The notes under the pieces: generated by a model
Told to the model about the DNA's origin: nothing
Seen by the model: only the letters and a program-made list of their open reading frames with translations
Database searches by the model: none
From: Neoechinorhynchus agilis
Taxonomy: Eukaryota; Animalia; Acanthocephala
Length of the DNA: 64,000 nt
Assembly (NCBI GenBank): GCA_051530055.1
Contig: CM121341.1
Span: 5,992,784-6,056,783, forward strand
Reading direction: 5' to 3'
Program-made: the position numbers and the translations under genes
Part shown: one piece after another, positions 14,348 to 19,515 of the stretch
Layout: every line of letters starts with the position of its first letter
How positions within the stretch are numbered: position 1 is the first letter of the stretch

Positions 14348-16753
14348 TCAAGCCAGCGGTCTTATTTTCATGTACTCCTTCACGACATCATCGGTGACTT
14401 TTGCACGACGCTCTTGATGTTCAGCTAGAAGTTTTGTGACCACATCAATTGTAATCTTCTTCAATTCTCCAGTTAACATTCGTCCAGATGAATAATCCTA
14501 AATATAAATAAAGCATCATACAACAGTTCCCATAAACCTCTCTTATTCGCTCCAATTCGGTGTCGTCGTCCATGAACAGTTTGAGATATTGAAAAGAAAC
14601 GTCAATATCGCAATTACCCCCTAACGCTCGATGTTCATCAATATTTGCCTGACCGCCACTGAAAGCGTATTTATTAATCTACAGTTTAGTTTAAAGACAA
14701 AGGGTCTAAAAAATAGGCAAAACCTTAGTTTTAATCTGCTTTGGAGTATCAGACAGAAAAATTGAATGAGTCGGATCAGAAGAACTCATTTTGCCTTGTG
14801 CTCCTTGAAGACCAGGAATGAATGTGGTATAAAGTGAACATGGTTTTGGTGTCCCCAGTTTTGGAGCAACGTCTCGAAACATTCGAAAATATGGATCCTG
14901 TTAAAAAAAGAACAATAAAAATATGTAAAGCAAAGAGTTAACGTCTACCTGATCAACGGCACATGGAATTAAAGCAGGAATGTTGTTGGCTTTACCAAAA
15001 ATAAATGGGAATGAGGTGCACATCGCAGGGGCCGCTTCCACTGCGGGAAATGCGATTTTTCCGATACAGTCACTGTCGCCTAATCCAAAGATTCCTGCCA
15101 ATAGAATTCCGACTGGTGCAGATGACCAAAAATTGAAAATCTTCAAACCTTTAACTTGATTAAAAGTAACACACCGTTGAACGCGTACGATATTCTTATA
15201 GAAGTCAGGGCATTGCCTTGAACGCAAAATAAAAGCAAGTGATCATTGAGTACACCCAAAAACACTCAAATACACACTCACGTATACTCATACAAACTCA
15301 TGTACACTAGCGTGCACTCACATACACTCACACGCGCTTACACGCACGTAAACTCACATACACTCACGTACACTCGTACACTCAAATAACCCACGTACAC
15401 TAACGTACACTCACATACACTTACATACACTCACATAACTCACGTACACTCACGTACACTCACATAACTCACGTACACTCACGTACACTCACGTACACTC
15501 AAATAACAATCGTACACTCACGTACACTAACGTACACCACCATACACGCACGTACACTAACGTACACTCACATAACTAACATAACTCACGAACACTAACG
15601 TACACTCGCGAACACTCGTACACTCAAATAACTATCATACACTCACGTACACTCGCATAACTCACATAACTCACGAACACTGCCGTACACTCAAATAACT
15701 ATCACACATTCACGTACACTTACATAACTCACCTACACTCATGTACACTACCAAACACGATCGTACACTCACGTACACTCACATAACTCACGAACACTCA
15801 CGTACATTTACGTACACTAACGTACACTCACATAACTCACGTACACTCACGTACAATCACGTGCACTCACGAACACTCACGAACACTCGCGAACACTCAC
15901 GAACACTCACGTACACTCACGAACACTCGCGTACACTATCATACAATCACGAACACTCACGTACACTACCATACACTCACGTACACTACCATACACTCAC
16001 GTACACTACCATACACTCACGTACACTCACACGATCGTACACTCCCACTCACAGGTTCTAATATAAACTCACGTACACTCACGTACGCCACATACACCTT
16101 ACCCGATGAAACTAAAATCAGCAAAGACAAATGTCTTTTGTGGACAAAAGCCGCAAGCAATAATATCCTTAGCATTTTCCAATGCCATGCGTTCGACATC
16201 ATCAACGGAATAATTTTTCCAAAGAAACTTCTCGTCATCGGTTAGCTGGATTATCAGTGGACACTGAAATACGTCCTGTAGCCACCTACACTTCGACTTG
16301 ATAATATTTCAAAATTAGAGAATAGAACTTATTGATTATGAATGGAATGAGGTGTCCAAGGTGCATTGATCCGGTAGAAGGTCCCCGACCTGTGTAGAGG
16401 TAGAAAGGCTTCTTGCACTTGAATCTCTCGATTATAAAGTTCATATCACTGCGCGCATTCGTGAATGAAATGTGGTGCAATATATACACTAGAGACTTCT
16501 TACCGATGGGCAAATATAATACCACGTAGAAAAAGATGATGAAGTTTAGTCGGAAATATCGTACTTTGAAAAGACTCAAGAAGCTCATGGGTAACAAGTG
16601 AGCAACCAAATCTCTCTAAAATCAAAAAAGACGAGCACGGTGCAATGAGTTTGTGAACGTAGGCTTACCAGTTAGCTTTTTATAGTCAACTCCAGCATTG
16701 GATGTGGCATGGACGTTCCAGGGATCGACAATATCTTCTCCAGTTTCAGTCAT
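14348..16753 (-). CDS. WARS1: Cytoplasmic tryptophanyl-tRNA synthetase, multi-exon
   Basis: Exons: [14 protein letters not shown]; [10 protein letters not shown]; [24 protein letters not shown] (HIGH-like); [10 protein letters not shown]; [17 protein letters not shown]; [13 protein letters not shown]; GKMSSSD (KMSKS-like); INKYAFSGG; [10 protein letters not shown]; stop TGA at 14348-14350. Confidence 0.96.
15250..16098. repeat. Degenerate 9-10-bp minisatellite (CACGTACACT / CACATAACT / CACGAACACT) filling an 886-bp WARS1 intron (15217-16102)
   Basis: Directly visible tandem units; intron bounded on the minus strand by GTAAGG at 16102 and AG at 15217. Confidence 0.95.
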
Positions 16754-17298
16754 TTTGTTCAGTAGTTTCGAGTGGTGATCTTTAATAAATTTCAAGGAGA
16801 TTGGTTTCCGATATTATTGAAAGCGATTATCTTTACACGCAAAATCTTGTTCTTCCTCGAGATGTAAAAGACATGTTCGGCATTTTCATGAATGTAACTG
16901 AGAGTAGTTGTTTCCCCCCAAAAAAACTGTAGACAATGGAGGATTCTTATGGTCTAATCTCAAAACATCCACTTTGATAATCACTTTCCACAACTAAGAA
17001 ACCGTATTTTGGATAGGTTCATTGGATGGACAATACATACGTTTTGTGGAGCACAAGTTGAGAATGAAGGCGGTGGTGGCCGCAAATACAAAAGAATTCG
17101 ATTTATTACTCTTGGAGTTGCAATAAAGGGTTATTTGAAGCCTTAGTAATATTTTTACAAACAAATAAATTATGGAATTTTCCCTTTTTTATTTTTAGAA
17201 AAAGAGACGCGGGAAAAACGTTACCAAATCAGGAATTATTGTTTAGAAGTCTTCACCCGCGGTAAATGATTATTGGGAACCTCGTGTGGGATTCATCA

Positions 17299-17441
17299 AC
17301 AACTTTCTTCATGCTTTTCCCTTCTAATTTTTGGTTTTATTGGTTCAAGGTCTTAACAGTCGGATGCCCTTTCTGACACCAACCCTCCCCATTAATCCGG
17401 GCTTGGGACCGGCACCGAGTTTACTCGGGGCTGGGTTTGCC
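17299..17441 (-). mobile_element. 143-bp non-autonomous retroelement-like insertion carrying a twister ribozyme, with 10-bp TSD
   Basis: Perfect direct repeat GGATTCATCA at 17289-17298 and 17442-17451. The insert reads twister core, GTCAGAAAGGGCATCC, AATAAA, then GGGAAAAGCATGAAGAAAG (RTE-like ends, recognised from memory). Confidence 0.75.
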
Positions 17442-17443
17442 GG
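17379..17443 (-). ncRNA. Twister self-cleaving ribozyme (type P1 with P3 hairpin)
   Basis: Minus strand reads CCGG-CAAA-CCCA-GCC-CCGAGtaaaCTCGG-TG-CCGG-TCCCAAGC-CCGG-ATTAA-TGGG-GAGGG-TTGG. P2 CCCA/TGGG, P3 CCGAG/CTCGG, P4 CCGG/CCGG, loop TCCCAAGC and GAGGG match the twister consensus. P1 is weak (CCGG/TTGG, two G-U pairs). Confidence 0.88.
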
Positions 17444-18152
17444 ATTCATCATCCTCATCATCAGTTCTGGAATACAAGTGATTAAGTAATTATTCTTTGC
17501 TTTCGCATGCGCGCTTATCTCTGATTGTGTTGTTTTCTTTTTCGGTTAGCTATGACGACAGAGTTTGTAAGCTCGTTGGTCATTCACCTTCGGTTTCTGT
17601 TCTTTTATTAAGGTTTTTTAATTAAGAACGTCGAAGGATATTGCGCGTTCACTAAAACCATTGTTTTGTCGAAATTGAATACCGTGGCAAGTTTGCACCT
17701 CGTTCAACGCGATATTCGACGAAGCCATCTTCCGAAAATCTCGTCTTCAGATTCCGGCCCGTATTCCGTTCAATGTAATTGCTGTTGCGTTTTTTTACAA
17801 GAAACCAACTTTATAGACAAGAACCCTTTTTTTTCTACTTGCAATTGTGTTTCCGTTAAATGAGGCTTCCTTATCGGCAGACCGCTGCTGTTCACTATCC
17901 GTGAAATTTGGTTATGCCAAAACTTGGTTTCCGGCACTCCAATGCGCCCTCATACTTTCCACTTGCTCTCTCGCTGAAGTAAGAACATCTTTTGGGTCCC
18001 CTAACTTGCTGAAAATTCGTTTCAACTGTTGGTTTTCGTCAATGAGGCATAGGCACGATGCAGAAAGCGTTTGACCAACTTTGTGCTCTTGTTGTAATCA
18101 CTGTTTCCCAGTATTTATAGTTATTTGTTTCAGTTGGCTTTCTGTAGACAGG

Positions 18153-18798: not shown

Positions 18799-18870
18799 TG
18801 CCTCGGCCAGGATTCGAACCTGGGTTTTCACGGCCACAACGTGAAGTACTAACCACTATACTACCGAAGC
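18799..18870 (-). tRNA. tRNA-His (GUG)
   Basis: GCTTCGGTAGTATAGTGGTTAGTACTTCACGTTGTGGCCGTGAAAACCCAGGTTCGAATCCTGGCCGAGGCA: 72 nt, acceptor GCTTCGG/CCGAGGC, anticodon stem TCACG/CGTGA around TTGTGGC, intact T-loop, discriminator A. Confidence 0.95.
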
Positions 18871-18979: not shown

Positions 18980-19515
18980 GCGCTATTGGATTTACTGTTA
19001 GGGAGAATGCGATTGGACCGAGAGGATCTCCTTGCTGCACTCCTCTTTTAGACCAAATGAGGCGGTCTTCAAAATGCAAAGGAGTCGCGGTCCCGTAGGC
19101 ATTGAGAAAATACTGGAAGGGTTTCTGGGACATGATCAATAATTGCGCGGAACAAGCTTTCTCTATTGAGAGAGTTAAAGGCGTTCCGAAAATCACACTT
19201 AAGAATCACGCACGGGTCTGAACTCCTCGTAGCAAAGTTTCGGAGCGCGTGGACAATAGCTTCCGCCCCGCAGGATGTGCAGCAGTCCAGTTGGACTGGG
19301 CGAAGTTGCTGCCCGGTTTTCTCTGTGATACGTTTACAGAGAATTTTTCCTGCGAGCCGGCGTATCGTCGAAGATACGGCGATGGGACGGATCCCACTTT
19401 TTTGTGAGGGCACATAATGATGCTCCGAAAAATAGGTCTTTTCCAACGAACCGAAAAAGCGCACTTTCTAAGGAGAAAGCCGATTCAAAAGTTGAAAAAC
19501 TGATGTGAATTTCCA
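18980..19515 (-). mobile_element. Frameshifted reverse-transcriptase fragment of a CRE-like non-LTR retrotransposon
   Basis: KSGIRPIAVSSTIRRLAGK, CGAEAIVHALR, ILKCDFRNAFNSLNR and GVQQGDPLGPIAFSL (RT motifs); ends before YxDD. Confidence 0.85.

Follow-up and report, generated by a model that had tools for sequence, protein, structure and literature searches.

A short insertion on the minus strand of the 64-kb stretch of DNA analysed here (the window) is very probably a dead, one-off and internally deleted copy of an RTE-clade LINE headed by a twister ribozyme. The element proper occupies 17299-17437 and measures 139 bp, compared with the 143 bp proposed in an earlier note on this DNA, which described it as a twister-ribozyme mini-retroelement. 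About 95% of the element body is lost in this copy and it codes for nothing: no ORF of 40 aa or more was found on the element's strand, in line with the earlier impression that the element has none. On the minus strand the locus consists of flank, TGATGAATCC, GGCA, AACCCAGCC..., the twister, a short non-coding stretch, ...GAAGAAAGTTGT, TGATGAATCC and flank again. The motifs said to follow the ribozyme and the GGGAAAAGC..GAAGAAAG end are present in the sequence.

The element is enclosed by a 10-bp perfect direct repeat, GGATTCATCA, at 17289-17298 and 17442-17451, as had been noticed before. This motif occurs only twice in the 64-kb window (shuffle mean 0.26), both times flanking the element. 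On both sides the element is bordered by parts of a short, abundant repeat, here called X. The left part of X (17455-17612, minus strand) is present in at least 40 copies of 72-83% identity, while the right part (17232-17298, minus strand) includes a 43-bp motif (17232-17274) of which at least 50 copies exist, 88-100% identical and frequently arranged as inverted pairs 130-170 bp apart. The joined site, TGATGAAYYC..GAGGTTC, which contains a single copy of the duplicated bases, was located by pattern matching at 408 places genome-wide (control 0), and these sites often form inverted pairs 40-60 bp apart. Repeat X looks MITE-like or foldback-like. The existence of 408 paralogous empty sites identifies the 153 bp comprising the enclosed sequence and one repeat copy as an insertion and confirms the proposal of a retrotransposed insertion with a target-site duplication (TSD). 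The flank does contain GATGAT runs in which short repeats are likelier, so the direct repeat could be put down to chance in a GAT-rich tract, with no insertion between its copies. Such a coincidence is extremely improbable: apart from the empty sites and the rarity of the motif in the window, both ends of the enclosed sequence come from one LINE family.

The duplication proved to be longer than the perfect repeat. Comparison of its two copies with each other and with uninterrupted paralogues places the 5' copy at 17438-17451 (10-bp core 17442-17451) and the 3' copy at 17285-17298, both on the minus strand, with 12 out of 14 positions matching. The upstream copy ends with ...CCGGCA and the downstream one with ...CCCACA; among the uninterrupted paralogues, two have TGATGAATCCGACA and, after it, CGAGGTTC. 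As TGATGAATCCGACA differs by a single substitution from each TSD copy, the duplication is best described as a 14-bp TSD with one later substitution per copy. The TSD of the earlier note therefore stands, but its length is 14 bp with two mismatches rather than 10 bp, and the four extra bases GGCA that had been assigned to the element are target DNA. The last base of the upstream copy immediately precedes AACCC, where the twister +1 position lies; this copy therefore supplies the -1 base (A) and the entire 5' strand of P1. Dependence of P1 on the flank had been recognised correctly; only two bases of its 5' strand had been attributed to the target, however, and in fact the whole strand is target DNA.

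The rest of the family was identified through its 5' ends. The 163-bp stretch bounded by the 10-bp repeats (17289-17451) matches at least 40 other loci with 79-91% identity, but only over its positions 15-131. When the copies are lined up, homology begins at AACCCAGCC (AACCC) and the upstream flanks are unrelated. Downstream of the twister heads, many copies have an APE domain (PF03372, 46.6 bits) followed by RVT_1 pieces. The reading frames are broken in all the family copies that were read. The database proteins that come closest (42-52% identity) bear the name craniofacial development protein 2-like, which we take to be the usual label of BovB/RTE-type endonuclease ORFs. A tail pattern built from the last 26 nt of the window element was found at 35 places in the genome, the reversed control at none; tails beyond the retrieved loci (about 30) were counted as pattern matches. 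Several tails follow a twister head of the same orientation at a distance of 2.5-3.0 kb, and in L068, a copy with both ends, the head-tail distance is 2.93 kb. The 3' tail of the family has the form (GTT)n G. The family is a LINE of about 3 kb with APE and RT, a twister head, a (GTT)n tail and RTE-like architecture. From this architecture and the nearest relatives we infer that it probably belongs to the RTE clade.

Two long reading frames were considered as the family ORF and rejected. The 643-aa RVT_1 ORF (77 bits) in L061 (G000:C1:11036500-11041700), a twister-headed copy interrupted by a different retroelement, has no counterpart in other copies and belongs to the inserted element. The 413-aa ORF in L070 matched nothing in Pfam.

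The genome also contains a second, shorter twister type, with about nine matches of 51-55 nt (34-43 bits) sharing a GACGGTCCCAAGCCCG core, among them G000:C2:7368298-7368352, C2:11595050-11595104, L053 and L055. Its surroundings are unrelated to the family described here. An endonuclease-like ORF lies downstream of the shorter twister in L055, which may therefore head another LINE family.

Both ends of the window element align to the full-length copies. By alignment to L068, L067 and L010, window positions 17437-17324 are equivalent to nt 1-114 of the full-length element, i.e., the twister and the start of the 5' UTR, and positions 17325-17299 to its last ~27 nt. The 5' segment (17324-17437, minus strand) resembles at least 40 copies at their 5' ends (83-90% identity); the 3' segment (17299-17325, minus strand) is the RTE tail ending with GTTGT(TG), whose pattern was counted above. 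The earlier suggestion that an RTE 5' end had been fused to an RTE 3' end is thus borne out. The two alignments share AG at the junction, or GAG in comparison with most copies (17323-17325, minus strand), so about 2.78 kb is missing at a microhomology of 2-3 nt. This junction occurs once in the 46-Mb genome, with up to 3 mismatches allowed. Pairwise identity of the window copy to other copies is 79-91%, indicating that it is old.

Directly 3' of the ribozyme there is a block of about 40 nt, GTCAGGAAGGGCATCCGGCCGTAAAACC..., with 80-99% column identity among 31 copies of subfamilies A, B and C. In the window it corresponds to GTCAG.AAGGGCATCCG... at 17342-17378 (minus strand), the start of the RTE 5' UTR. 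Conservation of this block equals that of the ribozyme itself and falls off beyond about +105. The block could be a 5' UTR, translation or promoter element.

The complete twister core that had been recognised by eye on the minus strand was found again with the Rfam twister-P1 model. Scanning of 17150-17600 with cmscan gave an RF03160 match at 17379-17442 (minus strand) over the full model (1-68), with a score of 48.0 bits and E-value of 9.9e-10. The match is below the Rfam gathering score of 67.2 bits, which explains why the gathering-threshold Rfam scan of the window missed the twister and reported a tRNA alone. Genome-wide (46.2 Mb, 102 contigs), RF03160 has 44 matches in the range of 32-60 bits, the best scoring 60.4 and none reaching 67.2, while 14 control genomes gave zero matches. 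The shortfall from the gathering score lies largely in P1, that is, in flank DNA. The match, the family boundary and the pair counts together define a twister-P1 type ribozyme, in which 17379-17437 is derived from the element; cleavage is predicted to fall between 17438 and 17437.

In the window copy P2 (CCCA/UGGG), the P3 hairpin, P4 (CCGG/CCGG) and both partners of the pseudoknots T1 and T2 are all able to pair. Over 35 copies the paired share is 85% for P2, 92.5% for P3, 93.6% for P4, 90.5% for T1 and 90% for T2. P1 formed with the flank is paired at 43.6% across the same 35 copies, which is the chance level expected if its strand comes from random target DNA. In the window copy two of four P1 pairs form in the canonical register and all four in the shifted register of the earlier note, which placed a 4-nt CAAA at the cleavage loop. 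The canonical register, with A at -1 and cleavage before AACCC, is nevertheless preferable since it agrees with the 5' boundary of the family and with the 0-7A variants described previously (PMC8501958). Covariation gave no additional evidence for the fold: the score of 0.153 over 35 copies was equalled or beaten by 97 of 500 shuffles, and the changes are mostly one-sided. The fold therefore rests on conservation and on the covariance-model score. The minimum free energy structure of the 73-nt RNA did not recover the twister fold (z-score -0.43) and is uninformative for a double pseudoknot.

The exhaustive mutational scan of the Osa-1-4 twister has shown G13, G30, A46 and G48 to be the sole positions at which any change is harmful and loop L2 to be largely tolerant (PMC5113685). 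P1 is reported to be non-essential (PMC5113685, PMC8501958). Equivalents of the four intolerant positions (Osa-1-4 numbering) are all intact in the window copy, so it may still cleave if transcribed. Several deviations had been listed as potentially harmful to cleavage. One of them concerns the AUAAA linker, which reads AUUAA in the window, the replaced A being shared by at least 90% of copies. None of those listed touches the four intolerant positions (PMC5113685).

The boundary of the duplications carries information about the parent RNA. The family homology and three TSDs (those of the window element, L068 and L014) all start at the predicted +1 base. The TSD of L068 is a perfect 14 bp, or 16/17 when extended to the base before AACCC, and that of L014 (10/13) likewise reaches this base. 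TSDs of the family are 13-17 bp long and differ in sequence. A TSD abutting the twister cleavage site suggests that the parent RNA had been self-cleaved. Such starts are expected if the reverse-transcribed RNA was released from a longer co-transcript by its own twister, which would imply cleavage in vivo.

Type-P1 twisters cut near their own 5' end, so that almost the whole ribozyme remains on the downstream product. The window element could accordingly have arisen as follows. The parent element would have been co-transcribed from an upstream promoter, and its 5' twister would have cut the transcript just before AACCC. The cleaved RNA would then have been copied into a nick in repeat X by target-primed reverse transcription, with priming on the (GTT)n tail beside ATG in the target, the outcome being a 14-bp TSD abutting the cleavage site. 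The loss of about 2.78 kb (from nt 114 to the last ~27 nt) at the 2-3 nt microhomology could date from the insertion itself, if the reverse transcriptase switched position on its template, or from a deletion in the genome afterwards.

Repeat X has probably been hit more than once. L010 (G000:C2:13625140-13628240) is an RTE derivative inserted at the same position of another X copy. A single origin of both insertions, through duplication of a repeat already carrying the RTE, is less likely than independent hits: the X copies hosting the window element and L010 are different variants, each with its own empty copies, and their flanks are 74% identical, compared with 85-95% for the RTE parts. Each of the four copies whose TSD could be read has ATG immediately 5' to the duplication, in X as part of GATGATG, which resembles the GTTGTTG tail. 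These four cases suggest that microhomology between tail and target may play a role in priming or target preference. In L010 the tail and about 110 bp of X flank, located approximately 960-1240 nt downstream of the twister, are tandemly duplicated with a period of ~144 bp.

The description of the element as a mini-retroelement and a twister analogue of retrozymes was not supported. A tail within 1.5 kb of the twister head was found for only three of 38 unique heads, namely the window copy, L014 (207 bp) and L010 (~1010 bp), and each of the three has a different internal junction. No second ribozyme or internal direct repeat was detected in 17150-17600 besides the TSD, the region giving one twister match. 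With a single ribozyme and without an LTR-like repeat, there is no two-cut route to a circle. The proposed genome-wide search for copies thus succeeded in part: TSD-bearing relatives and a copy sharing both ends (L068) were found, but the same short structure was not found elsewhere. A SINE-like family would consist of several copies of one short structure, and the window junction was found once in the genome.

The window copy and L014 could still be two insertions derived from one deleted non-coding master mobilised in trans by the RTE machinery, which would amount to a twister-headed 'SINE'. Each has precise 5' and 3' ends and a TSD of its own, they share a T in AAAAATTAG that is absent from the other subfamily-A copies read, their tails match identically over 32 of 32 nt, and their twisters are 90% identical, among the highest pairs. 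The shared T and the identical 32-nt tail match do leave room for a common deleted source. We nevertheless consider it unlikely. The internal junctions of the two elements differ, that of L014 being unique in the genome at up to 3 mismatches just as that of the window copy is, and each lacks a segment kept by the other. L011, a copy of about 3 kb, is equally close to the window element (91%), and nearby tails are confined to the three heads mentioned above. The differing private junctions favour the one-off deletion derivative. Even less probable, in our opinion, is that the neighbouring tryptophanyl-tRNA synthetase (TrpRS) gene has kept or recruited the ribozyme in its upstream region, its 5' UTR or an intron, where the ribozyme would cut read-through transcripts. 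The same-strand gene downstream of the element codes for a cytoplasmic-type TrpRS; its first recognisable coding exon lies at about 16750-16795 (minus strand), 500-550 bp from the element, and the next exon matches PDB TrpRS chains (E-value 6e-14). The position reported earlier, about 550 bp upstream of WARS1 on the same strand, is therefore correct. This location would suit co-option, as would the integrity of the four intolerant positions and of all P2, P4, T1 and T2 pairs (PMC5113685). On the other hand, the element has diverged as much as other dead copies (79-91% identity), carries the linker substitution at the strongly conserved A and is situated inside another repeat; nothing sets it apart from neutral decay. 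Decay of a one-off insertion remains the preferred reading.

Three further features were recorded in the neighbourhood. A tRNA-His (GTG) gene (18799-18870, minus strand, 64.4 bits), of the same orientation as the element, precedes it by 1.35 kb. Beside this gene, an ORF fragment at 19069-19464 (minus strand) has an RVT_1 score of 27.3 bits, just under the cut-off, suggesting a retroelement remnant. A low-complexity CA/TA-rich tract at about 15246-16061, which gives mechanical plus-strand ORFs rich in H, T and Y, lies between TrpRS exons and is presumably intronic.

The closest described system is Perere-3, an RTE-clade element of Schistosoma mansoni with T-variant twisters at its 5' end, for which cleavage was demonstrated in vitro and in reporter constructs (Liu et al. 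2021, PMC8501958). The TSD of Perere-3 adjoins the AA of the cleavage site and forms the 5' strand of P1 (PMC8501958). The family described here shares with it the position of the twister at the extreme 5' end of an APE+RT LINE (PMC8501958), the TSD directly beside the cleavage-site AA with a P1 strand supplied by the target and hence varying between copies, and a short tandem repeat at the 3' end (GTAA in Perere-3, GTT here). The differences are that the host is another one and that the window copy has lost ~95% of its body and is noncoding. Ribozyme-based 5' processing in such LINEs is thus already published for Schistosoma Perere-3, and the window copy is an ordinary example of it.

In Trypanosoma cruzi, L1Tc and the truncated NARTc have a common 77-nt 5' end with an HDV-like ribozyme (PMC3185411, PMC3383444, PMC5814959). 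As in the L1Tc/NARTc pair, the LINE is headed by a ribozyme cutting its own 5' edge and a short noncoding derivative keeps the head. NARTc, however, is HDV-like and forms a mobilised multi-copy family, while the window element has a twister, a single copy and a private junction. Retrozymes are non-autonomous LTR-type elements with a hammerhead in each of two direct repeats and a circular RNA (PMC7761336). The window element resembles them as a small, noncoding, ribozyme-bearing piece of retroelement-derived DNA flanked by a TSD, but it has one twister, a LINE tail and no internal repeat, and retrozymes need two cuts and are tied to LTRs. NARTc is therefore the nearer parallel. HDV-like ribozymes are also reported to reside at the 5' ends of R2 and RTE elements, in work credited to Eickbush and Eickbush (2010) and Ruminski et al. 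(2011). The likeness consists in the 5' processing of co-transcribed LINE RNA with the ribozyme staying on the downstream product; the ribozyme class differs, being a twister here.

Overall, the window element is a single dead deletion derivative and no new class of ribozyme retroelement. On its own it is of little consequence, as one decayed copy of a published element type. Its modest value is that of clean natural evidence: the insertion is documented by 408 empty sites and its TSD ends at the predicted scissile bond. If the deletion preceded the insertion, ~114 nt of head and 27 nt of tail within a full TSD would set bounds on the cis requirements of these elements. A deleted master common to the window copy and L014, if real, would be a twister counterpart of NARTc-type elements, made up of hardly anything beyond a twister head and an RTE tail and dependent for its propagation on self-cleavage and a tail of 27-85 nt. 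A mobilised family of such mini-elements, if found, would show that ribozyme-headed non-autonomous retroposons exist with twisters as well as with HDV-like ribozymes.
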